This document shows positions 520 to 46,203 of a DNA stretch of 64,000 bases, piece after piece. Position numbers and translations under genes: made by a program. The DNA lies in assembly GCA_964035545.1 (NCBI GenBank), contig OZ037767.1, positions 15,442,998 to 15,506,997 of the forward strand, in the 5' to 3' direction. Numbering within the stretch: position 1 is the stretch's first letter; each line of letters starts with the position of its first letter. The stretch comes from Bugula neritina. Taxonomy: Eukaryota; Animalia; Bryozoa. The notes under the pieces are model-generated. The model was not told the origin of the DNA. It ran no database searches and saw only the letters and a program-made list of their open reading frames with translations.

Positions 520-721
520 TTTGCGGTGGCTTATAATATGTTAGCTTCATTCAAAATATCTGGCAAAAAGTTTATCATGAGCTAAATGATATGATCTCTA
601 ATGATCATCATAATTTTAACTCAATATATATTTATAAAATAATTGCTTCCAATAAAAAATGAAAACTTCCATATGCATAAAACACTTGCATGACATAAAA
701 GATGAAATGAAATACCCGGCT

Positions 722-3881: not shown

Positions 3882-6800
3882 CTAAACGAGCACATAGCAA
3901 GTAGAACTTGAAGAATTTTCAAACACAACTGAAACCTCATTATGAATATAACATTTAGCTGTAGAGGTTATTGAAAATGCTGCACAATTTTGATATTGCA
4001 CACTGCAAGCGTAGGCACATGATTCTATTGAGAGCTGTTTGAAAACCCCAACAGATTTACTGCTACACATGCGATCAGATAACGCTGAGAATCTTTTATG
4101 CTTTGGATGACTCAAGTAGTAAAAAGTTTGAGAAGTTTTGCTGTAGACAATGAAATTATTCTCAGTTGATGTGGCGGATATGAGGTCAAGGTCAGTGTTC
4201 AGACCAGTCACCACAACATCTACTAATCCAACATGGCCGCTACTCACTTTGAATCTCTTCAGTTTTCCTTTGTTTACAAACAGCTGCTGCCCATCCACAA
4301 CAATAGGTATGCAATTGTTGCTGCACTCAAAGCTGACAGTGTTGGTGTTTTTGTGAACAAGAGATTTAGCTTTGCAGGTTTTAATATCACTTGTAAGTGA
4401 AACAACTCCAAATGATTGAACTGTTGGATAATAAAAGTTGCTGGCAAAGCCAGTTACAAAACCAAACTGAAGACTGTAGTAGCCATGTATAATGATAAAA
4501 TATGAGGGATAGATGTTTAAAATTACAGAGTAGACATTATTGTTTTTCACACAATTTATGATTAGTCGTGTAACGTCTGCAAAGTATAAAATTGCCAGGT
4601 GAGTTGGTGAATCAAGTCTAATATCAGAGATTCGAGAGTATGTTTGATATGCAATGAGGGTACCTGCTTCACCGCAGTGACCAATCATAGCATAGTTTAC
4701 ATTTAGTAGGTCAGCAAGATTTACTGCTTTTATACAGTGCTCTGATTGGTCCGCTACAAAAATAGACTGGTTCTTGTAAGATTCTAAAAGGCTGAGTTTA
4801 GACAGGTTTGCAAAAATAATATGACTAATTGAGGTAAATGTGTAGGAATTTTGCATATATAGGCACAACCTTGTAGCTGCACACCAGCTACTACTGTACA
4901 GTCTCCATGGTGATTGATCTCTACAAGTTGTTTTGATGTAGCTGTTATTATTTTAGTAGAATCAGTTGGATGTTCAATAAAGGATATGATGTCATCAGTC
5001 ATTTTCTTGACCCCAATGTGACTAGTGGCCTGGTAAGGAGTGCTGGTTGGACCATCTGCCGAATCAGTTATTAACCTTTGACCTACAAACAGGTACACAT
5101 TGTTTAAAACTCAGGTGGGTTTTATATATCTGAAAAAACTACTGATGGAAAGGCTTTTTAAACGGACTAAAGATTTGCTTTTTATTAGGGCACAAGGGCA
5201 ATTATGACTAACATTACCAATACAGCATTTATATAACAGAAAATTGCTGTTTAACCCATATATATATAATAAAATATTCAACAATTTTAGCAATTTATGA
5301 AACTGTTCATGTAAAAACCAAATTTAAGAATCTTATCAAGTATTGCTGTAATTCTCCGCAAGTTGTGTTAGTTTGCTGAAACTTCATCTTTTCATATACC
5401 TATATAATACTTTAAACGGACATTGCATATGACTTGAATATTGATTAGCGCTACATGAATTAGCTTAGGGCTTGTTTGACAAAGATCAAAATTAATATTT
5501 AAATTATAATTATGTATTAAATATTGGACTATGGTATGTTCAAATTTGTTTTATTATTCTAAAACTTGTTTGATTTTATGCAAGTCCAACATTCTGGTCT
5601 CTAATGTAAACGAACAATTTTTATCATATCAACAAAGTGCTTAATGCAATAATTTCATTCTTAGCCAAATGGCAACTTTCTAACATGAGAACATGTGTTT
5701 ATTTAATTTTTAAAAACCATAACAATAAACATCTTTTGATAGCACTTTTGCAATATAGAATATTTAATTTAAATTGCGTTACTTTATATGGACTGCGGTA
5801 GGCATTATATGAATTAAGTTTTGTTTATATACCTTAACGATTTATAGTCAGAAATTCAATTTGGCAGAGTTGAAATTTTTCCAAGTTGCATTGCATTATG
5901 AAAGTCACTCGTAAAATTTTTTGTGCTGTGATAACTAAATCGGCCGAGTTTAAAATAACAATCAAAAGGAGTAATAACTCTTTGTAAACATCATTATTTA
6001 GTTATGACTTGAGCGACTATAAATGACAATTCAATATGTTTATAATTATATTGTCAACGCTTTCCCAATTATCGCTTTTATGCTGTCAATTTTATTAATT
6101 CAGGAAGTTTTCAAAAGTAGTCAAATAGCAACTTTCTTTCATAATATTATAGTACCATACTCTGATTACAAGTCTATGATCTAAACTGCGAAATGTTATG
6201 GTTACATAGATTGTGAATTTAAGTTGCATGGCAGAAACAAATATATTATAACTGCTTTTAGAATACATTATATATGCTTGTCCATTGATACTGGTTTTAT
6301 ATAACACCAGTCTTATATTACTGGCTTTATATAACAGCCGTCCTATATTACTGTTCTTATAAAGCCGGTCCTATTAAACCCCTCCTTTATTTCTATAGTC
6401 CTATATAATACCGGTCTTCTTAAAATAAGCTGGTCCCATAATATTGATCCTATAATATACTGATCCTATATTACCTACAATAGGCCTATAGTAAGCTGGT
6501 CCTATATAATATTACTTATAGTCCTACATTACTGGTCCTATACAATAATATAATAAGCTGGTCCTATATAATATAATAAACTGGTACTATATATAATATA
6601 ATAAACTTGGCCTATATAATATTAGTCCTGTAGTGCATGTTGGTGCTACAATACTGGTCTTATAATAAGCTGGTCCTATAGTACTGGTTCTATAATTAAA
6701 CTGGCTTCCTAACATTGTTCCTATCACTCACAATATATCTATAAAAATAATTGATTTATATATTATATATAGCTGAATAATCAGTATATCATAGTTTATT

Positions 6801-7753
6801 ATACATAGAAACAATAACAATTAATTTGAAGGACAGCTGTTTATAAACCAATCACATTACCTGGGAAAGTCTTGTAGATACTGTTTCTCCATGTTCCACC
6901 ACACATTTGACTACTGTTCCCTCTGCATGCTCTACGACACTCAGTTTCCCCTGCTTTACCATATTTGTTGTATTCAACACCACAATAACACTGGTCAGTA
7001 GATTGTACTCCTGCATATGGCTGTCCTGAAATTAGTAAATTACTAATCGATCTTTATAAATATAACAACACGATAAATCACAAAACACAATTTTTTTATA
7101 GTTCAGCTACAATTGGCAGATTCAAACTTATATATGCCTTTAAAATGGAAAAATACTGAAATCAATGAAAATTAAAAATAAACGTTTTCAAAGAATCAAA
7201 TAATTATCAGGTATAGTAGGTTCTTACAAAATATTTTTGGTATACTGCAGTTATTTTTGGAAACATTTATAAAAATATTTACCTTGTATAGTGCAGTAGC
7301 CAATACAAAGCTCCACGGTCATCAAACGAGTTGAAAATGCTATGGGTAACGCTCTGCTACTAGAGTCCTTGTAACAACCAATCAGCTGGTTGAGAGTGTT
7401 CACCAGATGCAAACACAGCCAGAGTTGCAGAAGCACTTAAATTATACAACTAAATTAGTCAATGTTTTGTAAAAAAAAGTTTGAACTAACAGACTCAAGT
7501 ATTTAAAAAAAATAAAATTTAGAATAAAAAGTTTTGAATAGATAAAATTGAAGCAAAATATAAAAGTATAAAAAATTTACATAGTAAGTTAAAACACATT
7601 TTTTTGTTTAGATATAAAAAACGGATATAATAATCTACATTGAAATTAACATTTCGAAATTTTTTAAGTTGATAAACATGTTTTTCATATTTTAGATCTT
7701 ACGAAGCTAACTGAAGCAAAGCATATCTTACCAAGCCTTAGCTGCAGCAACAT
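3882..7753 (-). pseudogene. Gene A1: secreted WSC / NHL-like / PAN-Apple protein, frameshifted; exons 7753-7732, 7435-7283, 7025-6861, 5082-3882
   Basis: GT-AG phase-1 introns join a signal-like peptide (MLLQLRLVLLQLWLCLHL), WSC (IGCYKD..RALP..MTVELCIGYC..G.PYAGVQ..QCYCG..C..C.GN..MCGG.WRNSIY) and the large last exon. A +2 TA insertion at ~4856-4861 splits that exon into ORFs 4784-5098 and 3882-4868; the A2 copy is unbroken. Confidence 0.85.
6290..6725. repeat. Degenerate ~16-20 bp tandem repeat (ctggtcctatataata-like) in intron 3 of gene A1
   Basis: More than 15 recurrences of ctggtcctata variants; a shorter version sits at ~29238-29457 in unit 2. Confidence 0.75.
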
Positions 7754-9317
7754 TTCATTATTACTATGTCTAGCCAATTCAACCTTTAATCATGCAGTAA
7801 ATTGGCTTTGAGTTTGTAATAACTTTTATTTCTAGATTAGAGATTTATTTTGGAATGCAAAATACATTAATTAGTTTGCACATATGTAAGATACACAACT
7901 TGGTTTGCCTGTGCAATTGTAACACTACTCCAACCTTATCCTAAAAGGCCTAGACTATATATTTATTTTATGAATTTATTTTCAAATATAAGGATACAAC
8001 TTGTTTGGAAAAATAGATCATGTTGTTAATGAATCGCAAAGTAAATGGGGAAATCTAATTGATTACAAATCGCAAACATCCCACATCCTATATATATACT
8101 GCACACTTTAAGCCGCACAATTATAAATTGTATAATTAGTTTTAATTTTACTTTAGGTAATATTTTAAACAATTTTTTGTAGCAAAATAATTTCTCATAG
8201 ACATTTTCTTGAATTAATTTTCGTTGACATGTGTTATAATGAATGATATATTTTGATGTTTACTTTATGTAACATTTTAACAACTCATATACTAGTATTT
8301 GTTTATTATAGATATGTCTATAATTTAGAATGAAATGAGATAAATTGTGCTACATTGTATGGGTATGCTGCTTTAAGATGGCAATTTTATATTTTTGCTA
8401 TAGGTGGTGCTTATAAGCAAAACATATTATTATGATTATCAATATAATTATTATTATAATGGTGTTATAACATTGACATATGTAAAATAATATAAATATT
8501 GATTTTTACATTATTTTAGGTTAATGTTGAAACAAAGATTACGTAGAGATATTACTTTTATAGTTGTTTTTCATTACTTGGTGTATCTATTATGACAACA
8601 TGCATTGAAATTATTCGCCCACTCTCAGTTACACAACAACTTTATTATAACATCAGGAGAATCACAATGAAACATGATACCAACATTCTATCTTCCATTA
8701 GCATGAAATATTTGACAAAGTTAAACATTATCAGACATTCAAATGTTTACTGTCACTATTAGCATGAATATAGATTTTTCATACTTTTTATGACACTAAT
8801 AGCATGAATTATCTTTGTATTCTGTTTATTTATTATAAATAATACATATACTTTACCAGTTTTCTATATCCGACGATCTTGCTGCTATAACACACTTTAC
8901 GTTACTTAATAATTGCAAAGTAAATATCATAAGTACATCTCTGAAGTTGCAGACACTTTGAACTGTAAGAACAAAGTTTTTAACAAGGGAATAATAAGGA
9001 AAAATCTATAAATGAAAGTTTTTGTTGTATGTGGGCATTGTTATAGGCTCTTTCAATAAGTTCACTTCGTAGATGCTACAACAGTAAGTTACTAACAAAC
9101 TTTATTAATTTTATAGTGAAATATCATTTTCTTAAATTACATAATTCAGCAGTTTTACTTTTTATGTGGTATATAGCTGATTAAAGCACTATATAGAGCT
9201 GAGAAGCTCTGAACTTTAGTGAAATTTCTATTTCATTATCAGAAGTGGTTGGTGCGTGTATATTAGTAAATGACTGTACTGTATTCTATGTGTGCATATA
9301 ACTCTTGAAAAGACTCT

Positions 9318-9376
<59 letters not shown>

Positions 9377-9380
<4 letters not shown>

Positions 9381-9625
9381 GTACTGATACAATTTTGGAT
9401 ATAAAAATAAACTTGGATCTTCATTTTAGCGACTACAATATTGTTTCACGCAGTGCAAGCTACGATCATCAGGTCGTTGTGTGTACGGTTGAGTGCTTTT
9501 GTTTTGAAATTACTCAAGCGTACACACAACGACCTGATGATCGTAGCTCGCACTACGTGAAACAATATTGTAGTCAATAGAATGAAGATCTAAGTTTATT
9601 TTTATATCCGAAATTGTATTAGTAC

Positions 9626-9629
<4 letters not shown>
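9377..9629. mobile_element. Palindromic (foldback) MITE embedded in a (TA)n microsatellite
   Basis: tttggtactgatacaattttggatataaaaataaac... mirrors ...gtttatttttatatccgaaattgtattagtaccaaa over ~118-bp arms. (TA)n tracts flank both sides (9324-9377, 9629-9676). Confidence 0.85.
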
Positions 9630-9688
<59 letters not shown>

Positions 9689-9833
9689 ATATATATAGAT
9701 ATATAGATATATAGATATATATGATAAAGTAAAATATGCCATCACACCACTTTCTCTAAATAGATATCAAATATATAACACTATATACAGTCACATGTTA
9801 AGTAAACAAAGAATGTGTTATATCAGAGTAGAG

Positions 9834-12410
9834 ATGAAGAATATTCTAGAAGTATACGCTCTGATTCTCCTTATACATGTGACTACTTCAGAATACATGG
9901 GGTGTTATAAAGATGAAATAGAGAGAGCAAATTGCCTTTAGTCGGGGAAATTACTAACATGGCAATATACTTTTGTATAGGCTACTGCATCTATAGAGGT
10001 AAAGATAATACGACGTAAATCTGTTTTTCTATTTAATATATTATGCCATAATTATATAAACTTTATTAGATATGTGATGTATTGAAATTGTGATTCTTTT
10101 ACATCAATTATATGACTATTATTATCTTTTTCTCAAACATAATATAAGCATATTATAATAATATTATATTATATTCTTATACAGCAATTATATTTTTATT
10201 ATGTTGTTCTCATCCAGTTATATAATACTTATGGCATCTTGATATTTAATTATTCTTGTACAGCAACTATATAAACATTATATAATTCTTGTATAGTAAT
10301 TATAAAAATGTTTCATTATTATTGTATATTAGATATATAAACATTATATCATTATTCTATTGTAATTATATAAATGTTATCTGTATATTTTAGGCCAGAT
10401 GTATGCTGGTTTGCAGGATGGCAGACAATGATTCTGTGGTACAACCTTTGACCTCTATGGAGCTCTAGACAAATCAAGTTGTAGCAGTAGATGCACGGGA
10501 AATGCGAGTCAGATATGTGGGGGAAGCTGGGCAAACAGTGTATACAGAGCACTGTCAGGTAAGATGAGACATTTTTAGATAAAATGAGAAAAGTCCTTTA
10601 GGTAATACATGAAATTGGAGTTTTTTAATCTTCACAATACTTATCAAATTTTATTTAACCAAATATTTACTTTTACAGACGATTGTTATTCTAAAAAATT
10701 GGCTGATAGCGAAATAGTTTTTAAAGGAATATTAAAATAATTAAACTCAATTAAGAAAGTTTGAATGATTTGACCTTAATACTTCTGACAAAAAGTATTA
10801 TTACCATGAATTTTTAATTATTAACAACTAATAATTTGTTTAATCTATAGCTACATTGTTTAGTTTATTTCCACACTCTTGTAAGTAACAGTATATGGTA
10901 TAGAACAGTATATAACATGTTTTTTGTTGACTCGGGTAAAATTTTTGTAACTTTATGATAAACTATAATAACTTAGCTCTTTTTGATATGCTAAATAAAT
11001 GTACATATCTTTATTATGTTAAAGCTTGCTAACCTAAATAATTATGTATATTTTAAGATATATGTAATACATATTTATTTATTTAGTAATATTTACTTCT
11101 GTGTTTTTATGAGTTTCTAGAATCATAGTTTTATTGTTACATTATTTATTATTATACCATTTTTAGAAAATGTCAAAACACGAAAAAACAAACCCGCAAA
11201 CTTAGTCCACATCAGAAATATTGAAGTTAGAGAAATAAGTGAGGAAATCATATCCTTTATCGAACATCCGGCTGATTCTACTAAAATAATAGCAGCTACA
11301 TCAAAACAACTTGTAGAGATCAATCATCATGGAGAGTGTATAGCAGTAGCGGGTGTGCAGCTACAAAGTTGTGCCTATCGATCAAATGAATTTTCTTTTT
11401 CCTCAATCGATCATTTCATTTATGCCCAGTTCACCAAACTGCAAGTATCTCACAGTCTTTTCAACAAATCAGCCATTTTGGTTGCTGATGCAGGTAATCA
11501 CTGCGTAAAGTTTCTCATTCTAAAAAATTTATCATCTTTTGAGTTTGACAATTCAATAAATGACTACCATGTTGGTAAGTGTGGATCTTTTAAAAAAGAA
11601 CTTTTGACTGAAAATATTCAAAATTTAATTGATCCTAAAGAAATGGAGCTAAATAGCCCAAAACATCTTTCTCTGTACCATGACTCTGAGACTATCAGAC
11701 TGGTTGTTAACTGTGTACTAACAGAAGTATACTCTGTTATTGTTAGTATCTATCCAACTCACACTGTGGCATATGAGTACAGTGGACACCCTGGGTATGT
11801 TACTGATGTTTCTGAAAATCTCTATTGGCCATTATTTCGATCAAAAGGATTGAAAAGTCTTTCAACTGATAACAGCACATTAATAAACCAAATCCTTGTC
11901 ATTAATGGGAGTTACTCAACTACTGCAAATTATTATTGCGATTCCAGGAACAGTTCTGCTATTCCCAGACTGTTTCAAAGTTGGCCTCTAATAATTGCAA
12001 ATGGTGAATTGAAATCCCTGGTTTATAATTTGACAAGCAGTGAAATCAAACTAACTAACATAAATATTGCTAATCTTTCTACAAAAACACCCCCTGAGTT
12101 TAACCTGTTCACTACAACAAAGGAATCCGATCACATTATTCTCTACAGTCAAAGCCTAAAGAAATTTTATTATGCAAAGGCATTTTCTCGCTATCAGAAA
12201 ATTCTGGAAAGGTTCTGTAGTAAATATGTTATAGAAAAAGCAATTGTGGGTGGACCTGAAAGTTGTGCTTACATCTGTAGTAAATATGGTAGTCAGTGTG
12301 TTGCTTTTTCTGTTAATGATTATGATAATTCTTGCTACATTCATGACCACTTTGACTTGGCCGAGGCCTACATATCTAATGACTCAGCTTGTTATTTATC
12401 TATATCATAA
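9834..12410 (+). pseudogene. Gene B1: WSC / NHL-like / PAN-Apple protein, disabled in the WSC exons; exons 9834-9998, 10394-10558, 11167-12410
   Basis: MKNILEVYALILLIHVTTSEYMGCYKDEIERA is followed by a +2 shift (gcaAAttg) giving TAG at 9939-9941. Exon 2 has TGA at a conserved WSC Cys (Q*FCG, 10429-10431). The last exon is fully open, with an ILVADAGNHCV motif and the PAN Cys pattern. Confidence 0.85.
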
Positions 12411-12571
12411 TTATAACATATAATTGCATAGTTGAACACCACTTTCTGATGACAACATTAATGATGCTTTACTCTAACTTATGTTAATTTTTAATAATCA
12501 TAATTATATTATTTTCATTCACTTAAATATTTTATGGAAATGATACACAGTGGTTTTTAAAAATTATATGT

Positions 12572-12681
<110 letters not shown>

Positions 12682-13099
12682 TACTATATATACAGAGTCT
12701 GTACTATATATTACAGACGGTAGATTGCTATATTATATTTGTGTATCAACAAATCAATAAAATAAAAATCGAAGATATTGTTTATTTGAAGCTTTTTTGG
12801 AAATTTATTATAAATATTTGTAGGTTGTGTAATTACTGATTAATAAATAATATTTATAACAGATGGTTTCATTATAATTTTTAGATGACATTGTTTTAAA
12901 GAACATAATATGTATTAATTCAATCAAATTTATTTGACCCACAAGAAAATGCAGCACAATTATTTGTGAATTAAAAACTTCTTATTAAATAAAGATTGAG
13001 TAATAACCAATTCAGTATATTTTAACTATTGATATACTTATATAAGAGAGTAAGTTAAACAGAAATGTTCATCTTTGCACAGATACTTGCAAGAATATC

Positions 13100-13478
13100 T
13101 ATAGTGTATATAGAACTTTATAGATATAGAAAAGTTATAGATATAGAATAGTTATAAGTATAGAATAGTTATAGATATAGAATAGTTATAATTATAGAAT
13201 AGTTATAGATATAGAATAAGTATAAATATTAAATAGTTATAAATATAGAATAGTTATACATTAGATATAAAATAGTTATAGATATAAAATAGTTATAGAT
13301 ATAGAATAAGTATAAATATTAAATAGTTATAAATATAGAATAGTTATAGATATAAAATAGTTATAGATATAGAATAGTTATAAATATATAGAATAGTTAT
13401 AAATATAGAATAGTTATAGATATAGAATAGTTATAATTATAGAATAGTTATAGATATAGAACAGTTATAAATATAGAA
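13100..13478. repeat. 16-bp minisatellite (tatagaatagttatag/a)
   Basis: About 20 or more tandem units; essentially identical copy at ~35985-36360. Confidence 0.9.
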
Positions 13479-15769
13479 GTGCTGCAGTCAATAATTTAAG
13501 CAACTTTACAAACACATTATTATATATATACATAAACATTCACCAGATATATTTAATAATTTATGATGCACATGGTCAAACATGCAATTAATATTACTAA
13601 TATTTGCTTATAAATACAGTCATACTAATATTGTTTACATGACTGCATTTGTTGAAAAGAATGGTAATAACAGTTTTAAAAGACAATTAAAATTTTTTAC
13701 TGGGTTATGTAATATAATTTGTTTAACTGTTTCTTTTAATTACCAAATATCTAAAATAATATTTTAATGAACACAAAGTTATTCACTGTTTTTCCACTCT
13801 TTTTAAATCTGTAAAACAAAAATTTTTAGATTTAATAACTAAATAATAAACAGTGTCTGTTTATTTTTTTAAAAATAGACAGTGTTTATTTTAATCCTTC
13901 TTAAGAAACTTAATTAGGTAAAAAGTAAATTATTAAAAATTGAAAAATAATTGCCAAATCCAAGATACATCAATTCAATATTACATTTAAATTTATAAGA
14001 CAAATGACTTTTTGTTTTTGATAATAGATTTTTGTGTTTCATTATACAAGCTCTTTTGTAAAAAATGTTCTTATAATTATTAATATATTTTAAGAAATGA
14101 TTACAGTTTCAAAAGTGGTCAAATTACTGCAGCTGTTTGGCTTCAGTGAAACGACTCTTGTTGCTTAAAGCTAATGGGCTTTGAAATTATGTTTGTTATA
14201 GAAGGATTATTAATGTAAATATCTAAAGAAGCTTATAGACTAAGACTTAGTGCCTTGTAATTAAATATTATTTTACAGATATCCTATAAACACTGACATA
14301 TAACTCACAACAAAAAAGGTATTCTTTCATGTTTGAATATTGGAACTCAAAATTATTGATTAATTTTTAATTTTTAATATATAAACAAAACATGGAAGTT
14401 TACTATATACATTTAAAAACTTTAAGCTACGAAGCAACACTAAGTACAACAATTTCAGACCAGCTATAGAGATCAAATCTTGAAGAATAAAATCCAATCT
14501 TGTCAAGATACTGAAATCAGGTATTATGAGAATTAAATATATATACCTACATTTAACTTTCTATGTTTCACCTTTTACATGCAGTTTATGCTTTATGATT
14601 TATAAATTTTACACTCTATCCTTTATATTCTGTTTTCATATTGCATATTTAATATTTTATGCTCTAAGTTTCACCTTCCAGGTGTGACATTCTACATTTT
14701 AAGTTCTACATTTTGTATTCTAAATACCGTATCATATTAGAGGTAATGTCTTATACATTTTAGTAAAATGATCATAATATCACAGCCTTGCACTTGAAGT
14801 ATAAATTTTATAAGAATATAAGATGTTATAAAATTAGTTGGTGATAAAGTTTGAAAATGCACAATAGCATGAAGTTATTAATTATTCTAGTATTGATGAG
14901 CCATGAGTTTATTTTACAAGTTGTTTTTATTATGAGCTGATACATTTTCTATAAGCTGTAAAAGTGTTAGGATTGTTAGAATAACAAAAAAATAGTTTTT
15001 TCCTCTAAATGTTAAAACGAGACCTTGAAATTATTAATTTAAAGTGTTTTAGGAGTTTATTTAAACTTAATATATAGTTTTATAAAATAGGTTTAATAGT
15101 TATTATGTTTAACTTGAAAAACAAAAAAACTCTTATTTAATAATAAATTTCAAAATGTTGAGATATTATTCTTTACTAAAATGCCTATATTGTATAAGGT
15201 AATAACATTTTGCAAATTGTTATTAGCAGATGACAAATGAAATACCAATACGTTCTTATTCACAGTATAATGGTTCCATCCCAGCTAGATAGACACTACT
15301 TTTTATTTTGGTACCATATAATTATATAGTAATATATACCTATATATATATAGCGATATAACTGTTTCATTGATTGCTAAATAGCTAAAATGCTAATAAC
15401 TTTATTAGCTAACATGAATTATTTGGAATATTATTCTAATTTTCACAAATTTGTGAGAGACAAAAGACAGTGTAATACAATAACAATAGACATTACATTT
15501 AATTATTGACTACCCATTCACAAAATATCTGTTCAAACAAGAAGCAAAATATATTCAAAATTAATGTTTATGCAAATCAAAGAAATTGTTAATGTGCTAA
15601 ATATGTGCTTTATTTAAGTATATATATATTTTTTAATAATATTAAAATAAATTGCACATAAAATATATATTGTACCAAAATAAATTAGTAGCGTCTAACT
15701 GAGAGTTGCTATATATATCTAGGATAACACCCGAACAAACTGTTTTTATTAACAGCAGCTGTCTAGAAG

Positions 15770-23509: not shown

Positions 23510-23555
<46 letters not shown>

Positions 23556-23603
23556 GCTGTCTCTTGAACTGTTTGTAAAATACATTTTCATGGGCTGTTT
23601 TAG

Positions 23604-24770: not shown

Positions 24771-24815
24771 ATATCTCAGGGGTATAAATAGAAGAGAGAA
24801 CATCTTTTATATAAG

Positions 24816-26435: not shown

Positions 26436-27283
26436 ATACGAAACTGTTGCATATATCTTATATGGAAGTTATGTTCAGTGTCTCATTGTTGTTTACTCTC
26501 GTTCTGTTTGTTTTGCTGTTTTGTTTGCTGCTATATTTTTCCAAGCTTTATTTTTTTAAGCCAGTGGTTTTAAGTGAAACTTCCTTTATTTCCTGTTTTA
26601 AGTCCTTGCTTAGTAAACATCAAAAACAAACAAAAAATGATTAAAGGCTCCCTATAGTAAAGTGTGTAGATTTTAATAATTTAGTGAAGGATGTTTGAAG
26701 GTATTAGAGCTGTTTATTTGCCAGTCTTAGGGGTGCATTTTTGTATTTTGTAGAATAATATTAACTGTTATATTATATTAAACATAAATAAAAAAATCTC
26801 CCACATGAGTTATTCGCCAACAATTAAATCTGCACCCAATACTTGAATAAGACCATAAGGAACTATATATTATAGTGTGATATATATATAGGTACACTGT
26901 TAAACCAAAGGTGCTTCATTGTTACTCAAACAAATTTATTTATGGTTTTTTAATGAAAATGATCAGTAGAAAATATTCAGATAGTTTACAAAAAGCAGCA
27001 AAGCTCAGAATTCAGAATAATATTTATATTCCATGCCAGATGCATTACATAATACTGTTTATTGAAAATGCATGTTGTATGTCAAGTGTTGATTACCAAA
27101 ATAAATGGAATACAAAATCAGATTTATATATCATATAGCTAAATATTTAGAGTTATACACAGTTAGCTCAAATGATTATAAAGAGATATTACAAAAGAAA
27201 AAGGTGATACTCTTGTTTAAAGAAATTAAAGAGAATATTTCAATATATTGCTGTAAAAATTAGTTTCAAATTTTAGATAAGTT

Positions 27284-30200: not shown

Positions 30201-30492
30201 TCAATATTTTATAAGAAAAGTTTGAACTAACAGATGCAAGTATTTAAAAAAAAACTTTAGAACAAAAAATTTGAATAGATAAAATTAAAGCAAAATATAA
30301 TTAAGGCATAAAAGTGCAAGTTGAAACACATTTTTTTAGTTTAGATATAAAAAAAACAGTTATAATAAACTACATTGAAATTGACTTATTGAATTTTTTT
30401 TAAGTTAATAAACATGTTTTTCATATTTTAGATCTTACGAAGCTAACTGAAGCAAAGCATATCTTACCAAGCCTTAGCTGGCAATATTTCAT
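27284..30492 (-). CDS. Gene A2: secreted WSC / NHL-like / PAN-Apple protein, ~512 aa, intact; exons 30492-30468, 30177-30025, 29759-29595, 28479-27284
   Basis: MKYCQLRL|VLLQLWLCWRLVYTLNQLIGCYKD... with phase-1 GT-AG introns. Spliced 1539 nt is open; FIFVADQSEHCI motif; PAN Cys pattern at the C-terminus. The short first exon is the least certain part. Confidence 0.85.
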
Positions 30493-32054
30493 TATTACTA
30501 TGTCTAGCCAATTCAACCTTTAACCATGCAGTAAATTGGCTTTGAGTTTGTAATAACTTTTATTTCTAGATTAGAGACTTATTTTGGAATGCAAAATACT
30601 TTAATTAGTTTGCACATATGTAAGATACACAACTTGGTTTGCCTGTGCAATTGTAACACTACTCCAACCTTATCCTAAAAGGCCTAGACTATATATTTAT
30701 TTTATGAATTTATTTTCAAATATAAGGATACAACTTGTTTGGAAAAATAGATCATGTTGTTAATGAATCGCAAAGTAAATGGGGAAATCTAATTGATTAC
30801 AAATCGCAAACATCCCACATCCTATATATATACTGCACACTTTAAGCCGCACAATTATAAATTGTATAATTAGTTTTAATTTTACTTTAGGTAATATTTT
30901 AAACAATTTTTTGTAGCAAAATAATTTCTCATAGACATTTTCTTGAATTAATTTTCGTTGACATGTGTTATAATGAATGATATATTTTGATGTTTACTTT
31001 ATGTAACATTTTAACAACTCATATACTAGTATTTGTTTATTATAGATATGTCTATAATTTAGAATGAAATGAGATAAATTGTGCTACATTGTATGGGTAT
31101 GCTGCTTTAAGATGGCAATTTTATATTTTTGCTATAGGTGGTGCTTATAAGCAAAACATATTATTATGATTATCAATATAATTATTATTATAATGGTGTT
31201 ATAACATTGACATATGTAAAATAATATAAATATTGATTTTTACATTATTTTAGGTTAATGTTGAAACAAAGATTACGTAGAGATATTACTTTTATAGTTG
31301 TTTTTCATTACTTGGTGTATCTATTATGACAACATGCATTGAAATTATTCGCCCACTCTCAGTTACACAACAACTTTATTATAACATCAGGAGAATCACA
31401 ATGAAACATGATACCAACATTCTATCTTCCATTAGCATGAAATATTTGACAAAGTTAAACATTATCAGACATTCAAATGTTTACTGTCACTATTAGCATG
31501 AATATAGATTTTTCATACTTTTTATGACACTAATAGCATGAATTATCTTTGTATTCTGTTTATTTATTATAAATAATACATATACTTTACCAGTTTTCTA
31601 TATCCGACGATCTTGCTGCTATAACACACTTTACGTTACTTAATAATTGCAAAGTAAATATCATAAGTACATCTCTGAAGTTGCAGACACTTTGAACTGT
31701 AAGAACAAAGTTTTTAACAAGGGAATAATAAGGAAAAATCTATAAATGAAAGTTTTTGTTGTATGTGGGCATTGTTATAGGCTCTTTCAATAAGTTCACT
31801 TCGTAGATGCTACAACAGTAAGTTACTAACAAACTTTATTAATTTTATAGTGAAATATCATTTTCTTAAATTACATAATTCAGCAGTTTTACTTTTTATG
31901 TGGTATATAGCTGATTAAAGCACTATATAGAGCTGAGAAGCTCTGAACTTTAGTGAAATTTCTATTTCATTATCAGAAGTGGTTGGTGCGTGTATATTAG
32001 TAAATGACTGTACTGTATTCTATGTGTGCATATAACTCTTGAAAAGACTCTAAA

Positions 32055-32138
<84 letters not shown>

Positions 32139-32142
<4 letters not shown>

Positions 32143-32387
32143 GTACTGATACAATTTTGGATATAAAAATAAACTTGGATCTTCATTTTAGCGACTACAA
32201 TATTGTTTCACGCAGTGCAAGCTACGATCATCAGGTCGTTGTGTGTACGGTTGAGTGCTTTTGTTTTGAAATTACTCAAGCGTACACACAACGACCTGAT
32301 GATCGTAGCTCGCACTACGTGAAACAATATTGTAGTCAATAGAATGAAGATCTAAGTTTATTTTTATATCCGAAATTGTATTAGTAC

Positions 32388-32391
<4 letters not shown>
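32139..32391. mobile_element. Palindromic MITE in (TA)n, duplicate of 9377-9629
   Basis: Same sequence; only the flanking TA tract lengths differ. Confidence 0.85.
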
Positions 32392-32442
<51 letters not shown>

Positions 32443-32587
32443 ATATATATAGATATATAGATATATAGATATATATGATAAAGTAAAATATGCCATCACA
32501 CCACTTTCTCTAAATAGATATCATATATATAACACTATATACAGTCACATGTTAAGTAAACAAAGAATGTGTTATATCAGAGTAGAG

Positions 32588-35284
32588 ATGAAGAATATTC
32601 TAGAAGTATACGCTCTGATTCTCCTTATACATGTGACTACTTCAGAATACATGGGGTGTTATAAAGATGAAATAGAGAGAGCAAATTGCCTTTAGTCGGG
32701 GAAATTACTAACATGGCAATATACTTTTGTATAGGCTACTGCATCTATAGAGGTAAAGATAATACGACGTAAATCTGTTTTTCTATTTAATATATTATGC
32801 CATAATTATATAAACTTTATTAGATATGTGATGTATTGAAATTGTGATTCTTTTACATCAATTATATGACTATTATTATCTTTTTCTCAAACATAATATA
32901 AGCATATTATAATAATATTATATTATATTCTTATACAGCAATTATATTTTTATTATGTTGTTCTCATCCAGTTATATAATACTTATGGCATCTTGATATT
33001 TAATTATTCTTGTACAGCAACTATATAAACATTATATAATTCTTGTATAGTAATTATAAAAATGTTTCATTATTATTGTATATTAGATATATAAACATTA
33101 TATCATTATTCTATTGTAATTATATAAATGTTATCTGTATATTTTAGGCCAGATGTATGCTGGTTTGCAGGATGGCAGACAATGATTCTGTGGTACAACC
33201 TTTGACCTCTATGGAGCTCTAGACAAATCAAGTTGTAGCAGTAGATGCACGGGAAATGCGAGTCAGATATGTGGGGGAAGCTGGGCAAACAGTGTATACA
33301 GAGCACTGTCAGGTAAGATGAGACATTTTTAGATAAAATGAGAAAAGTCCTTTAGGTAATACATGAAATTGGAGTTTTTTAATCTTCACAATACTTATCA
33401 AATTTTATTTAACCAAATATTTACTTTTACAGACGATTGTTATTCTAAAAAATTGGCTGATAGCGAAATAGTTTTTAAAGGAATATTAAAATAATTAAAC
33501 TCAATTAAGAAAGTTTGAATGATTTGACCTTAATACTTCTGACAAAAAGTATTATTACCATGAATTTTTAATTATTAACAACTAATAATTTGTTTAATCT
33601 ATAGCTACATTGTTTAGTTTATTTCCACACTCTTGTAAGTAACAGTATATGGTATAGAACAGTATATAACATGTTTTTTGTTGACTCGGGTAAAATTTTT
33701 GTAACTTTATGATAAACTATAATAACTTAGCTCTTTTTGATATGCTAAATAAATGTACATATCTTTATTATGTTAAAGCTTGCTAACCTAAATAATTATG
33801 TATATTTTAAGATATATGTAATACATATTTATTTATTTAGTAATATTTACTTCTGTGTTTTTATGAGTTTCTAGAATCATAGTTTTATTGTTACATTATT
33901 TATTATTATACCATTTTTAGAAAATGTCAAAACACGAAAAAACAAACCCGCAAACTTAGTCCACATCAGAAATATTGAAGTTAGAGAAATAAGTGAGGAA
34001 ATCATATCCTTTATCGAACATCCGGCTGATTCTACTAAAATAATAGCAGCTACATCAAAACAACTTGTAGAGATCAATCATCATGGAGAGTGTATAGCAG
34101 TAGCGGGTGTGCAGCTACAAAGTTGTGCCTATCGATCAAATGAATTTTCTTTTTCCTCAATCGATCATTTCATTTATGCCCAGTTCACCAAACTGCAAGT
34201 ATCTCACAGTCTTTTCAACAAATCAGCCATTTTGGTTGCTGATGCAGGTAATCACTGCGTAAAGTTTCTCATTCTAAAAAATTTATCATCTTTTGAGTTT
34301 GACAATTCAATAAATGACTACCATGTTGGTAAGTGTGGATCTTTTAAAAAAGAACTTTTGACTGAAAATATTCAAAATTTAATTGATCCTAAAGAAATGG
34401 AGCTAAATAGCCCAAAACATCTTTCTCTGTACCATGACTCTGAGACTATCAGACTGGTTGTTAACTGTGTACTAACAGAAGTATACTCTGTTATTGTTAG
34501 TATCTATCCAACTCACACTGTGGCATATGAGTACAGTGGACACCCTGGGTATGTTACTGATGTTTCTGAAAATCTCTATTGGCCATTATTTCGATCAAAA
34601 GGATTGAAAAGTCTTTCAACTGATAACAGCACATTAATAAACCAAATCCTTGTCATTAATGGGAGTTACTCAACTACTGCAAATTATTATTGCGATTCCA
34701 GGAACAGTTCTGCTATTCCCAGACTGTTTCAAAGTTGGCCTCTAATAATTGCAAATGGTGAATTGAAATCCCTGGTTTATAATTTGACAAGCAGTGAAAT
34801 CAAACTAACTAACATAAATATTGCTAATCTTTCTACAAAAACACCCCCTGAGTTTAACCTGTTCACTACAACAAAGGAATCCGATCACATTATTCTCTAC
34901 AGTCAAAGCCTAAAGAAATTTTATTATGCAAAGGCATTTTCTCGCTATCAGAAAATTCTGGAAAGGTTCTGTAGTAAATATGTTATAGAAAAAGCAATTG
35001 TGGGTGGACCTGAAAGTTGTGCTTACATCTGTAGTAAATATGGTTTGTTTGTTTGTTTTTTATTTTGTCATAGTCGGGAAAAAATTAATTGAGAAAAAAA
35101 TAAACAAAATGACAGGGCCTATGGCGCAATAGCACTGTAGCTAGTCGGGGCACCGAGCCATGGTAGTCAGTGTGTTGCTTTTTCTGTTAATGATTATGAT
35201 AATTCTTGCTACATTCATGACCACTTTGACTTGGCCGAGGCCTACATATCTAATGACTCAGCTTGTTATTTATCTATATCATAA
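32588..35284 (+). pseudogene. Gene B2: same lesions as B1 plus an insertion in the PAN domain; exons 32588-32752, 33148-33312, 33921-35284
   Basis: Same +2 shift and TGA as B1. A 120-bp insertion at 35045 truncates the ORF (..CSKYGLFVCFLFCHSREKIN*). Confidence 0.88.
35045..35159 (-). mobile_element. 115-bp non-LTR retroelement 3' fragment / SINE with 5-bp TSD (ATGGT)
   Basis: Absent in B1. Flanked by ATGGT at 35040-35044 and 35160-35164. The minus strand ends AATAAAAAACAAACAAACAA (simple-repeat tail). Confidence 0.8.
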
Positions 35285-35445
35285 TTATAACATATAATTG
35301 CATAGTTGAACACCACTTTCTGATGACAACATTAATGATGCTTTACTCTAACTTATGTTAATTTTTAATAATCATAATTATATTATTTTCATTCACTTAA
35401 ATATTTTATGGCAATGATACACAGTGGTTTTTAAAAATTATATGT

Positions 35446-35563
<118 letters not shown>

Positions 35564-35984
35564 TACTATATATACAGAGTCTGTACTATATATTACAGAC
35601 GGTAGATTGCTATATTATATTTGTGTATCAACAAATCAATAAAATAAAAATCGAAGATATTGTTTATTTGAAGCTTTTTTGGAAATTTATTATAAATATT
35701 TGTAGGTTGTGTAATTACTGATTAATAAATAATATTTATAACAGATGGTTTCATTATAATTTTTAGATGACATTGTTTTAAAGAACATAATATGTATTAA
35801 TTCAATCAAATTTATTTGACCCACAAGAAAATGCAGCACAATTATTTGTGAATTAAAAACTTCTTATTAAATAAAGATTGAGTAATAACCAATTCAGTAT
35901 ATTTTAACTATTGATATACTTATATAAGAGAGTAAGTTAAACAGAAATGTTCATCTTTGCACAGATACTTGCAAGAATATCTAT

Positions 35985-36360
35985 AGTGTATATAGAACTT
36001 TATAGATATAGAAAAGTTATAGATATAGAATAGTTATAAGTATAGAATAGTTATAGATATAGAATAGTTATAATTATAGAATAGTTATAGATATAGAATA
36101 AGTATAAATATTAAATAGTTATAAATATAGAATAGTTATACATTAGATATAAAATAGTTATAGATATAAAATAGTTATAGATATAGAATAAGTATAAATA
36201 TTAAATAGTTATAAATATAGAATAGTTATAGATATAAAATAGTTATAGATATAGAATAGTTATAAATATATAGAATAGTTATAAATATAGAATAGTTATA
36301 GATATAGAATAGTTATAATTATAGAATAGTTATAGATATAGAACAGTTATAAATATAGAA
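35985..36360. repeat. 16-bp minisatellite, duplicate of 13100-13478
   Basis: Directly visible tandem units. Confidence 0.9.
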
Positions 36361-38651
36361 GTGCTGCAGTCAATAATTTAAACAACTTTACAAACACATT
36401 ATTATATATATACATAAACATTCACCAGATATATTTAATAATTTATGATGCACATGGTCAAACATGCAATTAATATTACTAATATTTGCTTATAAATACA
36501 GTCATACTAATATTGTTTAAATGACTGCATTTGTTGAAAAGAATGGTAATAACAGTTTTAAAAGACAATTAAAATTTTTTACTGGGTTATGTAATATAAT
36601 TTGTTTAACTGTTTCTTTTAATTACCAAATATCTAAAATAATATTTTAATGAACACAAAGTTATTCACTGTTTTTCCACTCTTTTTAAATCTGTAAAACA
36701 AAAATTTTTAGATTTAATAACTAAATAATAAACAGTGTCTGTTTATTTTTTTAAAAATAGACAGTGTTTATTTTAATCCTTCTTAAGAAACTTAATTAGG
36801 TAAAAAGTAAATTATTAAAAATTGAAAAATAATTGCCAAATCCAAGATACATCAATTCAATATTACATTTAAATTTATAAGACAAATGACTTTTTGTTTT
36901 TGATAATAGATTTTTGTGTTTCATTATACAAGCTCTTTTGTAAAAAATGTTCTTATAATTATTAATATATTTTAAGAAATGATTACAGTTTCAAAAGTGG
37001 TCAAATTACTGCAGCTGTTTGGCTTCAGTGAAACGACTCTTGTTGCTTAAAGCTAATGGGCTTTGAAATTATGTTTGTTATAGAAGGATTATTAATGTAA
37101 ATATCTAAAGAAGCTTATAGACTAAGACTTAGTGCCTTGTAATTAAATATTATTTTACAGATATCCTATAAACACTGACATATAACTCACAACAAAAAAG
37201 GTATTCTTTCATGTTTGAATATTGGAACTCAAAATTATTGATTAATTTTTAATTTTTAATATATAAACAAAACATGGAAGTTTACTATATACATTTAAAA
37301 ACTTTAAGCTACGAAGCAACACTAAGTACAACAATTTCAGACCAGCTATAGAGATCAAATCTTGAAGAATAAAATCCAATCTTGTCAAGATACTGAAATC
37401 AGGTATTATGAGAATTAAATATATATACCTACATTTAACTTTCTATGTTTCACCTTTTACATGCAGTTTATGCTTTATGATTTATAAATTTTACACTCTA
37501 TCCTTTATATTCTGTTTTCATATTGCATATTTAATATTTTATGCTCTAAGTTTCACCTTCCAGGTGTGACATTCTACATTTTAAGTTCTACATTTTGTAT
37601 TCTAAATACCGTATCATATTAGAGGTAATGTCTTATACATTTTAGTAAAATGATCATAATATCACAGCCTTGCACTTGAAGTATAAATTTTATAAGAATA
37701 TAAGATGTTATAAAATTAGTTGGTGATAAAGTTTGAAAATGCACAATAGCATGAAGTTATTAATTATTCTAGTATTGATGAGCCATGAGTTTATTTTACA
37801 AGTTGTTTTTATTATGAGCTGATACATTTTCTATAAGCTGTAAAAGTGTTAGGATTGTTAGAATAACAAAAAAATAGTTTTTTCCTCTAAATGTTAAAAC
37901 GAGACCTTGAAATTATTAATTTAAAGTGTTTTAGGAGTTTATTTAAACTTAATATATAGTTTTATAAAATAGGTTTAATAGTTATTATGTTTAACTTGAA
38001 AAACAAAAAAACTCTTATTTAATAATAAATTTCAAAATGTTGAGATATTATTCTTTACTAAAATGCCTATATTGTATAAGGTAATAACATTTTGCAAATT
38101 GTTATTAGCAGATGACAAATGAAATACCAATACGTTCTTATTCACAGTATAATGGTTCCATCCCAGCTAGATAGACACTACTTTTTATTTTGGTACCATA
38201 TAATTATATAGTAATATATACCTATATATATATAGCGATATAACTGTTTCATTGATTGCTAAATAGCTAAAATGCTAATAACTTTATTAGCTAACATGAA
38301 TTATTTGGAATATTATTCTAATTTTCACAAATTTGTGAGAGACAAAAGACAGTGTAATACAATAACAATAGACATTACATTTAATTATTGACTACCCATT
38401 CACAAAATATCTGTTCAAACAAGAAGCAAAATATATTCAAAATTAATGTTTATGCAAATCAAAGAAATTATTAATGTGCTAAATATGTGCTTTATTTAAG
38501 TATATATATATTTTTTAATAATATTAAAATAAATTGCACATAAAATATATATTGTACCAAAATAAATTAGTAGCGTCTAACTGAGAGTTGCTATATATAT
38601 CTAGGATAACACCCGAACAAACTGTTTTTATTAACAGCAGCTGTCTAGAAG

Positions 38652-41631
38652 ATGCATCAATATCTGATGTGTATAGCACTGGTTCCTATAGTTTATGGTT
38701 CAGTGTACATGGGTTGTTACAAGGACACCTCAACTAGAGCTCTACCATTGAGGTATGATTCCAATGACATGACAGTCGACCTTTGTATTGGCTACTGCAT
38801 TTACAGAGGTAAGTATTCCATTCACTTACTTAGTTGATTTTTTACAATACAGTGAAATTGCAACCTATAAAGCAGGGCTGATAAATTAGCCATCATTTTA
38901 GGAGTACGTCACAATGTCATGAAACTTCAAAGGAACTGCAATTATCCTGGAATAAGATTGCTACATACTTATACTTAAAATAATTGTGCTTGCTTTAAAG
39001 TTTAGACATTTTATCTGTGAGCTACATGCAGTTGGTATCTAGCATAGTGACCCGCAGTGGTATAGGGGTCAGAGCGTTTGCCTACAAGTAAGCACAAGGT
39101 AATGAGTTTGAGCCCCATTATAAGCCAGTAGTGATGTTAGGAAGAGCATCCAGTCATAATTGCTCCTGTGCCTCATATGAATAAGTCTTAAGCCAGCTTT
39201 AACAAAAACCCCTTCTATCAGAGATCTTCTCATAGGTATGGTGACTATAAACTTGTGTGAGTTGGTATATATTAGCATGTGTGCACATAATAATATATCC
39301 AAAAAAACTTGCATGTCGCAATATATATTGAATATCTATATAACTTTGAAATCTATAGCTAACTAGTTGTTTGATTGGCTATAAATATCATATTACAGTA
39401 AATTATTTAAAGTGAATTGATTATATCAAATTAATATGTTAGCAAGCATAAAGTCAACTAATATTAATAATCGCCTTAGTTGTAAACTGATTCAACAAAT
39501 GTAAATAAATCAATAGAGAAAGTTTATGCATACAAGCAATTAGCTGCTTGTTATATTTGTTCAGTAAGTGTAAATATTATACATGTTCAGAAACTGCTTG
39601 CTTAAATTTAGCTAATTAATAGCAAGTATAAACATTTTGTTATTTATATAAATGCTATGATATTAAGTTTGTCAGAGGAAAATTCAATTATACAATTATT
39701 ATTTGACTAGTCCTAGAAAAGTTTATGAATATTAAGATTATTTGAAGGATACTCAAATGATAGTTTATTAATCAAAGTTTTATTCACATTAACTAGAAAG
39801 CCCAGCTCTCTATCACTATATAGCCATGATATATTTGCTAAAATCTTGGGAAAAAGTAACTATGTTATAATGGCAAAATTGCTACTTATATATTTTCTAG
39901 TACATATATATGCTCATTGAACCATAATTTTTAATCAAATAAAATGTTGAAATGAATATTATTCAACCCTGCTGGTATTTCAAGGTCACCCCTACGCTGG
40001 TTTGCAGACGGATGACACTTGTTTCTGTGGAAGTGAGTACGACAAGTATGGAATCGGGGAAGAAACGAGCTGCAGAGACCCTTGTAAAGGAAATACTAGT
40101 CAGATATGTGGTGGAGGCTGGAGAAACAGTGTCTATAAAATAACTGGAAAAGGTGCGTAAAAAATGAACTCAAAATTAAAATTGAACAATTAAATTTCAA
40201 TGCAAATAAGGAAAATAAAAATATTTTTGATGCTTATTTACTATTATTTTAAAGCCTAAAAATTTGTATATTTGCACCTAAATTTTAATAAGATTTTAAT
40301 CGTAAAATATGCTTAGATTTAAAGTCACTTCAACAATGTATCAAACAGCTAAATTTTGTTCAAATTATATATACTGTATAGAAAAGAATGAATCTAGCCA
40401 AAGTGTACCAAGACCCATTCGCTATGTCGGCAAAATTGAAGTTGGAGAACTAACTGATGACATCATATCCTTTATTGAACATCCAACTGATTCTACTAAA
40501 ATAATGGCAGCTACATCAAAACAACTTGTAGAGATCAATCATCATGGAGACTGTACAGTAGTAGCTGGTGTGCAGCTGCAAGGTTGTTTGCATACGCAAA
40601 ACTCACTTTCATTTGCTTCCATCAGCCATATTGTTTATGCTCACTTCACTGATCTGAATATACATCACTTCCTGTTTAACAAGTCTGTCATCTTGGTAGC
40701 TGATGAAGGTGACCATTGCATTAAATTCTTTGAATTTCAACAGAAACCTTTGTTCTCTAATTTTCAAACCTACACAATTGGCAATTGTGGACTTCCACAA
40801 GTATCCCCTTTGTTAGCTGATAAAGTTCGACACTTTAGTGAACCTCAGGCAATCATGCTGAACACCCCAAAACATCTTTCTCTGTACCATGACTCTGAGA
40901 CTATTAGACTGGTTGTTAACTGTGTACTGACTGAAGTATACTCTGTTATTGTTAGTATCTATCCAACTCACACTGTAGCATATGAGTACAGTGGACACCC
41001 TGGGTACGTTATTACCAACATGTTAAATCATTTTGATTTTCCAATGATGAAATCACAGGGATTTAGCAGTGTGGAAAACAAAAGTGATTTAGCAAAGGTT
41101 GATTTGCATATTGAGGATAATCTTGGCAAAATAATCGGGGTTTATTTTTATTTTTGTGAGTCAACTATTAGTTCAGAAGTTCCCAGACTGTTAGTTGATT
41201 TGCCAACAATATTAATGAGTGGTAAAATTCAGTATTTGATTTACAATCATACTAGTCAGGAGCTGTTCATACGGAATTTACAAATTTTACATCTTCCTCT
41301 GGAAGCAGAGTCTAAACTGAGTCAGTATAATGTAGTACGTGATTCTCTCATACTCTACAGTCAAAGCCTGAAAACATTTTATTTCACAAAGAAATATTCT
41401 CAATATCAGAGAGTTAGTGAGAGTCAGTGTAGTCAGTCTATTATACAAAAGTTACAGGTGAATGGAGCTGAATCTTGTGCTTATGTCTGCTTTAAATATG
41501 GCGACCTTTGTGTTTACTTTTCATTTAATAGTGTAGACAACTTCTGTTATATTCATAATGAGGTCAGCAATACTAGTATCATTACTACTCCAGGTTTCTA
41601 CTGTTACACATCTTTAAATTATATATTTTAA
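38652..41631 (+). CDS. Gene C2: secreted WSC / NHL-like / PAN-Apple protein, ~524 aa, intact; exons 38652-38808, 39985-40152, 40382-41631
   Basis: Matches C1 except one K>T change and a divergent patch at 41001-41330. Spliced 1575 nt is open. Confidence 0.88.
39049..39252 (+). mobile_element. Duplicate of the putative SINE in gene C intron 1
   Basis: Same sequence as 16167-16370. Confidence 0.4.
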
Positions 41632-46000: not shown

Positions 46001-46203
46001 ATGCATGTGTTGTGAAGACAGTTGAAACCAAGCTGGCTGAAGATGGATCAACTGTGGCGCTGTTTGTAGATAAGATGGTTGTCTTAGGTGTGTTGGTTGC
46101 AGCCAGTGCTGTGTAGATGTTGGTTGATGTGGCAAGCCTGGTGATGACTGTGGAAACTCATCACTCTGCAAAGGATGGTGACGTGTCTGCTCTTTTCAGA
46201 AAT
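43066..46203 (-). pseudogene. Unknown multi-exon gene, apparently degenerate; exons ~46203-45463, 45236-44949, 44836-44702, 44598-44509, 44366-44298, 44011-~43834, 43212-43066
   Basis: Successive GT-AG bounded exons join in frame (five phase-1 introns, then phase 0). P/Q/S-rich N-terminal part, then KVKNCKVTVKVQGENIVYPFEDHLTIEDLK..., ending IIGQWMDSAKKGGL..GMKKNK*. Needs removal of a +2 TA at ~43933; TGA near the start of the 46203 exon. No family recognised. Confidence 0.6.
44141..44293. repeat. ~25-bp tandem repeat (tatatagtaagagttgtcttatctta), ~6 copies, intronic
   Basis: Directly visible. Confidence 0.85.

Follow-up and report, generated by a model that had tools for sequence, protein, structure and literature searches.

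The window analyzed here, a 64,000-nucleotide stretch of the Bugula neritina genome (contig OZ037767.1, positions 15,442,998 to 15,506,997), contains a cluster of duplicated genes and raises the question of what their products do and whether they form a family of recognition proteins. The genes are arranged as two tandem cassettes, each with an A-type gene on the minus strand and B- and C-type genes on the plus strand. All six paralogues have two short WSC exons and a terminal exon of 1.2 kb (Table 1). As the first-pass annotation had proposed, exon phases are conserved, all introns being GT-AG and in phase 1 throughout, and three genes (A2, C1, C2) are open while the other three (A1, B1, B2) are broken. 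Both B genes carry a TGA in the second exon, and their first exon is 165 nt long versus 163 in intact B copies, a common excess of 2 nt. A second copy of the 116-bp element inserted in B2 was seen near C2:29.547 Mb.

Table 1. Coordinates of genes, domains and duplicated or converted segments in the window
Feature	Position	Strand	Details
A-B-C cassette tandem duplication	2581..42374	.	period ~23 kb; 2581-19500 vs 25974-42374
A1, disabled	3882..7753	-	predicted micro-exon 7732-7753; exons 7283-7435, 6861-7025, 3882-5082; 2-nt insertion near 4860, in last exon
B1, disabled	9834..12410	+	exons 9834-9998 (frame broken), 10394-10558 (TGA at 10429-10431), 11167-12410 (open)
C1, open, 523 aa	15770..18746	+	exons 15770-15926 (signal-like N-terminus plus N-terminal half of WSC), 17103-17270 (C-terminal half of WSC), 17500-18746 (propeller and PAN)
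A2, open, 512 aa including predicted micro-exon	27284..30492	-	micro-exon 30468-30492; exons 30025-30177, 29595-29759, 27284-28479
A2 PAN/Apple domain, six cysteines	27287..27493 (approximate)	-	Pfam, PDB sequence match, AlphaFold
A2 six-bladed NHL-type beta-propeller	27500..28432 (approximate)	-	AlphaFold model and fold search
B2, disabled	32588..35284	+	exons 32588-32752, 33148-33312, 33921-~35284; B1 lesions plus insertion
Short interspersed-type insertion of 116 bp, B2 PAN part	35045..35160	.	ATGGT target duplication
C2, open, 524 aa	38652..41631	+	exons 38652-38808, 39985-40152, 40382-41631
Conversion tract 1, blade 1	28260..28400	-	near-identical DNA across A, B and C subtypes
Tract 1 equivalents	near 4860-5000, 11230-11375, 17570-17705, 33985-34130, 40453-40587
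Conversion tract 2, blade 3	40860..41010 (approximate)	+	~98% identity, B vs C subtypes

Exon 1 of the A type has no ATG and begins at a phase-1 acceptor, so this type needs an upstream coding micro-exon, on which its signal would depend. A hydrophobic N-terminus is present in B, C and dispersed copies; judged by eye, the signal-like segment is clear in B, short in C and weak in A. The first-pass annotation saw no transmembrane helix, and none was found in a 19-residue hydropathy scan, the maximum of 1.77 falling on a propeller strand; a membrane receptor was therefore rejected.

For this genome, splicing of the WSC exons to the large exon is predicted from DNA-level models. NCBI models (P0016 and P0012) already make the same join, the Watersipora subatra RefSeq entry XP_067941510 included, and each of the four paralogues dispersed outside the array likewise has WSC exons 5' of its large exon. 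XP_067941510.1 and the B. neritina entry EB796_008473 are true family members with the same exon order, and in them, as here, the first WSC exon ends at a phase-1 donor, but both are uncharacterised database entries in which the WSC domain is truncated or missing and which carry no family description. The exon order is common to B. neritina, W. subatra and relatives at ~20% identity, and by this measure the family is old. A metagenome scan gave no match, and a profile word search yielded nothing further. The first-pass annotation recognised no named family, and our literature search on bryozoan WSC/NHL proteins and on the WSC-NHL-PAN combination likewise found no name, paper or description.

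The proposed order of WSC domain, NHL-like propeller and PAN domain was borne out when the spliced models were scored against Pfam exon by exon and folds were predicted. Exon 2 matched WSC (PF01822) at 38-39 bits (E 1e-9; cut-off 27.8) and exon 1 matched profile positions 1-35; the Watersipora protein P0016 scored 50.7 bits, and the C-type spliced model has eight cysteines in this domain. At the C-terminus, PAN/Apple (PF00024) scored 20.5 bits in the C copies, slightly below the cut-off of 21.4, and 26.6 bits in family protein P0050, with matches in 11 of 21 family members. Six cysteines are conserved in the PAN part, for which both structure models show a PAN-like strand-helix-strand order, and its best PDB sequence match was the HGF PAN domain. 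AlphaFold models of the middle region (pLDDT 73 and 78, with lower confidence in blades 4-5 of A2) have a 24-strand, six-bladed topology, and a fold search with them placed NHL/teneurin-type propellers on top (Z 18-22). Repeated NHL motifs above the Pfam cut-off were absent; because a single motif was found, at 12 bits versus a cut-off of 20, we term the region NHL-like. The full-length fold was built from P0016 and gave a poor model of the WSC part.

Teneurin-like, SOQ1, NHLRC2 and PAL propellers share the fold (Z 18-21.7, ~260 residues aligned, rmsd 3.1-4.3). However, identity to the NHL propellers of teneurins, NHLRC2/SOQ1, PAL and TRIM-NHL proteins is only 11-14%, the Pfam NHL score is far under its cut-off, and the one recognisable motif lies in blade 2. 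Unlike those proteins, the bryozoan product is a predicted stand-alone secreted protein with WSC and PAN domains and extra disulfides, and lacks their other domains. The nearest proteins by language-model features were two rotifer clusters in the ESM Atlas (464 and 542 aa), at 0.79-0.83, a score too low to be reliable. They have the same pairing of NHL propeller and PAN, but with canonical NHL repeats, no WSC listed and no full-length HMM match shown, and the likeness may be convergent.

The first-pass annotation described a six-member cluster; six is the number in the window, but the surrounding array holds ~35 copies over ~750 kb, at least 16 of them broken, upstream exons having been read for part of these copies. 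Four further paralogues are dispersed, and a conserved low-copy gene was rejected. The two cassettes of the ~23-kb duplication are 93.5-98% identical. Three deeply diverged subtypes have been retained in two Bugula lineages. The array shows tandem birth-and-death expansion with mosaicism, and one branch of the family has expanded to ~35 copies in Bugula. The mosaicism takes the form of blade-sized gene-conversion tracts, within which 0-1 subtype-diagnostic sites were found versus 83-258 outside. These tracts, new here, homogenise the subtypes rather than diversify them.

On balance, we favor by a modest degree the reading that the family consists of secreted, non-enzymatic, multivalent glycan-binding proteins kept at high copy number with turnover. 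The products would be disulfide-rich binders of ~57 kDa acting extracellularly, in mucus, on the cuticle surface or in coelomic fluid. The N-terminal WSC and C-terminal PAN domains, which have the same PAN/Apple fold, would most likely grip glycans, and the propeller would be a third binding face that spaces them apart. We propose that, because it adds a face and separates the other two, such a protein could cross-link or coat glycan-bearing surfaces of microbes, food particles or matrix. Unequal crossing-over would have amplified the cassette to its present number; copy death is frequent, and purifying selection on the survivors is relaxed. Conversion keeps blade 1 common to all subtypes and blade 3 common to B and C, while the remaining blades would hold three subtype specificities. 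WSC and PAN domains also have protein ligands, as in Kremen and HGF, and this counts against glycan binding. The WSC domain does share the PAN/Apple fold and is found in beta-glucan-binding proteins (PMC9024836, PMC9252488).

A diversified repertoire for immune, symbiont or allorecognition, driven by an arms race and with copies and subtypes that bind different foreign ligands, appears rather unlikely. The high turnover of the array and the three subtypes kept in two lineages would suit it, and B. neritina is the host of a defensive, bryostatin-producing symbiont. FREPs, C1qDC proteins, amphioxus VCBPs and sea urchin Sp185/333 are secreted binders that likewise come in tandem arrays with birth and death and conversion mosaics, although their domains are unrelated, and diversifying selection on a binding face was not found in the bryozoan family. 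Overall dN/dS was 0.42 (18 sequences, limited power, no control-gene genome baseline). Omega was 0.49 on the top face of the propeller, 0.38 on the bottom face, 0.41 in strands and 0.43 in PAN, and the partition test on these 18 sequences, of limited power, detected no top-face excess of amino-acid change (P=0.40); diversifying selection on the top face was rejected on this basis. Model M2a was preferred to M1a (LRT 12.0, P=0.0025; 1.7% of sites at omega 5.7), but this signal is weak: the few sites with omega above 1 (~2%) are scattered and mostly reflect multi-nucleotide or conversion-type changes, which inflate that test. In addition, copies of one subtype are 87-99% identical. The Alr and fester/uncle fester allorecognition receptors have a membrane anchor or cytoplasmic tail, whereas here PAN ends the protein; lacking a membrane or signalling part, it is not an allorecognition receptor. 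Of the suggested resemblance to immune or allorecognition genes, turnover and mosaicism therefore stand, but diversifying selection does not, and the mosaicism homogenises. A recognition role for the family is possible.

Two further readings are each doubtful to a similar extent. One is a lectin-like recognition repertoire in which gene conversion would swap entire propeller blades between subtypes; constant blades would form a shared effector or partner site and subtype blades would choose the ligand, so sorting microbes or the defensive symbiont. The other is a structural or adhesive matrix protein of the cuticle, calcified zooid wall, larval attachment or mucus, amplified for dosage, with turnover and conversion as by-products. 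Dosage agrees with homogenisation and relaxed purifying selection, the teneurin NHL propeller serves as an adhesion module, and the fungal extracellular polysaccharide matrix is enriched in WSC proteins (PMC9252488). However, segments of repetitive, acidic, collagen-like or DOPA type are absent from the proteins, the three diverged subtypes coexist and almost half of the copies are dead.

It is very improbable that the family encodes an enzyme that is secreted and tethered by two carbohydrate-binding modules, along the lines of the WSC-glyoxal oxidases (AA5) and WSC-sugar dehydrogenases of fungi or of six-bladed PAL/SMP30-type enzymes. The fungal WSC lectins and WSC/PAN-tethered propeller enzymes, SiWSC3 included, are secreted, and the enzymes pair WSC with a propeller; enzymes of this WSC-plus-propeller kind were among the structural matches, PAL and lactonases had fold-search Z of 17-19, and close members conserve His86 and Asp110 (numbered on the A2 last exon). 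But the fungal propellers are of a different class (seven-bladed kelch or PQQ type), and the bryozoan proteins have a single WSC, a single C-terminal PAN and no conserved catalytic set. His86 is found in fewer than half of the members (18 of 41), Asp110 corresponds to the structural Asp in the NHL motif, and the top-face positions of the PAL/SMP30/DFPase metal ligands, assigned by motif register rather than superposition, are here Ile, Ser and Thr/Lys. Only P158, C353 and C375 are invariant across the 41 members, and conserved positions are Cys, Gly, Pro and hydrophobic residues; with no invariant His/Glu/Asn/Asp set, a PAL/SMP30/DFPase-type enzyme was ranked low. Least credible is that much of the copy number reflects uncollapsed haplotypes: an array block at ~271 kb offset is 98.9-99.9% identical and B1 and B2 are 99.96% identical across 2.6 kb, but the distinct last exons (at least six C and at least four A, separated by dS 0.03-0.16) exceed what two haplotypes can supply, on which ground a pure assembly artefact was rejected, and lesions and insertions are copy-specific.

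With no diversifying selection found, we regard the family as a new architecture of known parts, not a new recognition system: an NHL-like propeller flanked by two PAN-fold modules, with no prior description in the literature searched. The array cleanly illustrates gene conversion on the scale of a single blade within a propeller. For bryozoans, whose secreted proteins of surface and defence are almost wholly uncharacterised, it supplies specific candidates that could be expressed for tests on glycan arrays and under challenge.

The AT-rich animal DNA of the window holds six paralogues (A1, B1, C1, A2, B2 and C2, of subtypes A, B and C), whose last exons are the six long open frames. Self-comparison of the window showed a three-gene cassette present twice in tandem; the period is about 23 kb and the two copies are 93.5-98% identical. 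Within each, A lies on the minus strand and head to head with B, and C comes after B. Two short exons in every gene jointly encode one WSC domain and precede a 1.2-kb last exon, and the introns of all six are GT-AG and phase 1 without exception, in agreement with the conserved phases described in the first-pass annotation. Its tally of three intact and three disabled members was also correct: C1, C2 and A2 are open, A1 carries a 2-nt insertion near 4860, and B1 and B2 share a broken exon 1 frame and a TGA in exon 2. The PAN part of B2 is further interrupted by a 116-bp insertion, which has a 5-bp target duplication. Exon 1 of the A type lacks an ATG and starts at a phase-1 acceptor; about 290 bp upstream lies a candidate micro-exon with an ATG and a GTAAG donor, which would give A1 and A2 an in-frame hydrophobic N-terminus. 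Other elements are listed in the table. The MITE-like palindrome probably sits in the shared A/B promoter region, and the Plavaka-like region between the two cassettes is probably a decayed DNA transposon.

The proposed splicing of the WSC exons to the large exon is supported by comparison. All four paralogues dispersed outside the array have WSC exons ahead of the large exon, and so do both genes of a B. neritina NCBI contig, JGI Bugula contigs, Watersipora and two relatives at ~20% identity; in Watersipora the first WSC exon is likewise followed by a phase-1 donor. The homology searches were run with single exons; the WSC domain is already joined to the propeller in NCBI models from Watersipora (P0016) and Bugula (P0012). 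Comparative support for the predicted splicing is strong. No WSC exon was found within 5 kb of a more distant tandem pair (P0050), so propeller-PAN relatives without WSC probably exist.

AlphaFold modelled the A2 last exon (pLDDT 73) and the Watersipora protein (78, and >90 in blades 1-3) alike as a six-bladed propeller with an N-terminal closing strand, and then a PAN module. The top solved-structure matches were NHL propellers (teneurin-like protein, Z 21.7; SOQ1, 19.5; NHLRC2, 19.2; PAL, 18.9) at 11-13% identity, and just one NHL motif was recognizable, under the Pfam cut-off. Pfam detected PAN in 11 of 21 members, and the PAN domain of HGF matched weakly by profile. The propeller-like middle and PAN end first read from the sequence were recovered, as was the lack of a transmembrane segment, none being found in the family proteins. 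The WSC domain of yeast Wsc1 itself has a PAN/Apple fold (PMC9024836), and the protein would therefore be a propeller between two PAN-fold modules.

By our own count of last-exon matches, the array holds about 35 copies (11 A, 10 B, 12 C and 2 of a fourth type, D) in a genome of 216 Mb, with the A-B-C order repeating along it; dispersed last exons number two on contig C1, one on C2 and one elsewhere on C3. The last exon is fully open in 21 array copies, at least two of which are broken upstream, making at least 16 of the 35 copies disabled. A block repeated at a distance of ~271 kb (98.9-99.9% identity) appears to be either a recent segmental duplication or an assembly duplicate, and the array count may include some assembly duplicates, but two haplotypes could not supply as many distinct A and C sequences as were found. 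Predicted WSC-repeat genes are much expanded in the Bugula genome, and the clusters on C2 and C7 are separate propeller families.

Locations of features in the window and elsewhere (C2-C8, contigs of the B. neritina genome; L, loci of array copies or homologues)
Feature	Location	Strand	Remarks
Six last exons	window 3882-41631		
TA-rich palindromic element, ~420 bp, MITE-like	window 9315-9725 and 32055-32479		Between divergent A and B genes
Open frame	window 23371-24705	+	Weak Plavaka transposase match (E 0.008)
Inverted stretch related to Plavaka-like frame region	window 721-1821 vs 24854-25972		
Repeated element	window 43500-46500		Accompanies array; Pro/Gln/Ser-rich frame 45434-46171; copies at L036, L045, L049; 300-675 aa frame in other copies
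LINE-type reverse transcriptase frame, C-terminal C2H2 finger	window 58715-61405	+	RVT_1 E 5e-39
Array	C3:15.14-15.90 Mb		Includes the window (C3:15442998-15506997)
Repeated block	C3:15.158-15.19 Mb vs 15.429-15.46 Mb		
C copies, identical internal deletion	L025 (C3:15.435 Mb), L026 (C3:15.164 Mb)		Only exon 1 and PAN-coding end left
Dispersed last exon	C3:11.75 Mb		
Dense further WSC exons	C4:23.06-23.12, C5:3.6-3.83, C5:0.24-0.28, C3:19.18-19.22, C8:5.81-5.89 Mb		C4 run, >20 WSC exons in 25 kb
Clusters of 300-350 aa frames	C2:24.68-24.85 Mb, C7:13.60-13.66 Mb		Weak match via NHL motif only
Distant propeller-PAN genes, tandem pair	L062:5001-8399		No nearby WSC exon; marine metagenomes, animal source

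In a quick tree each of the subtypes A, B and C forms a clade with its own JGI orthologue, which places the subtypes before the split of two Bugula lineages; copies within one subtype are younger than that split. Array genes differ from orthologues in public B. neritina data by dS ~0.2, a distance that places the genome in B. neritina sensu lato or a near relative in the genus. Protein identity between subtypes is only 35-50%. Two tracts stand out, one of ~42 codons over blade 1 with DNA 88-98% identical among A, B and C, and one of ~50 codons over blade 3, 98% identical between B and C. Subtype-diagnostic sites number 0-1 within the tracts versus 83-258 in the flanks. In the blade 3 tract, three sites join B with C inside each lineage versus one that groups by subtype; these few sites suggest that conversion there continued after the lineages split.

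Codon models of 18 open last exons gave an omega of 0.42, read without a baseline gene. With residues assigned to structural classes by aligning them to the Watersipora model at ~22% identity, omega was 0.49 for the top face, 0.38 for the bottom, 0.41 for strands and 0.43 for PAN, differences that were not significant at this modest power (P=0.40). M2a was better than M1a (LRT 12.0, P=0.0025); the sites behind this signal make up only 1.7% of the total, are scattered and mostly reflect multi-nucleotide or conversion-type changes, a kind of change by which the test is known to be misled. The regime of the array is one of turnover, conversion and relaxed purifying selection.

On balance we slightly favor a secreted, non-catalytic glycan-binding protein that coats or cross-links surfaces. 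WSC domains are present in beta-glucan lectins and enriched in fungal extracellular polysaccharide matrix (PMC9024836, PMC9252488). The WSC and PAN modules would bind glycans and the propeller would add a third, non-catalytic binding face, so that surfaces bearing glycans could be coated or cross-linked. The three subtypes would provide three specificities, and tandem amplification a higher dose. A diversified immune or symbiont-recognition repertoire is an unlikely alternative. The array resembles expanded invertebrate secreted binding families in genomic behaviour, but it fails the diversifying-selection test, and the comparison of the top face with the other structural classes was negative. 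A matrix or adhesive role seems somewhat less likely again. An enzyme is highly improbable, since Cys, Gly, Pro and core hydrophobics make up the residues conserved in 41 members, with no invariant metal-binding set among them, a pattern that speaks against a PAL- or SMP30-type activity.

No paper on the combination of WSC, NHL-like propeller and PAN, and no family name for it, turned up in a literature search. The closest look-alikes by features, rotifer NHL+PAN clusters, score under the reliable range, and named homologues were found only in the cheilostome bryozoans Bugula neritina and Watersipora subatra (XP_067941510.1). The Bugula array proteins have no membrane anchor. The parts are known and the combination appears to be new: a real, undescribed and apparently bryozoan architecture, carried in a large and fast-turning array.
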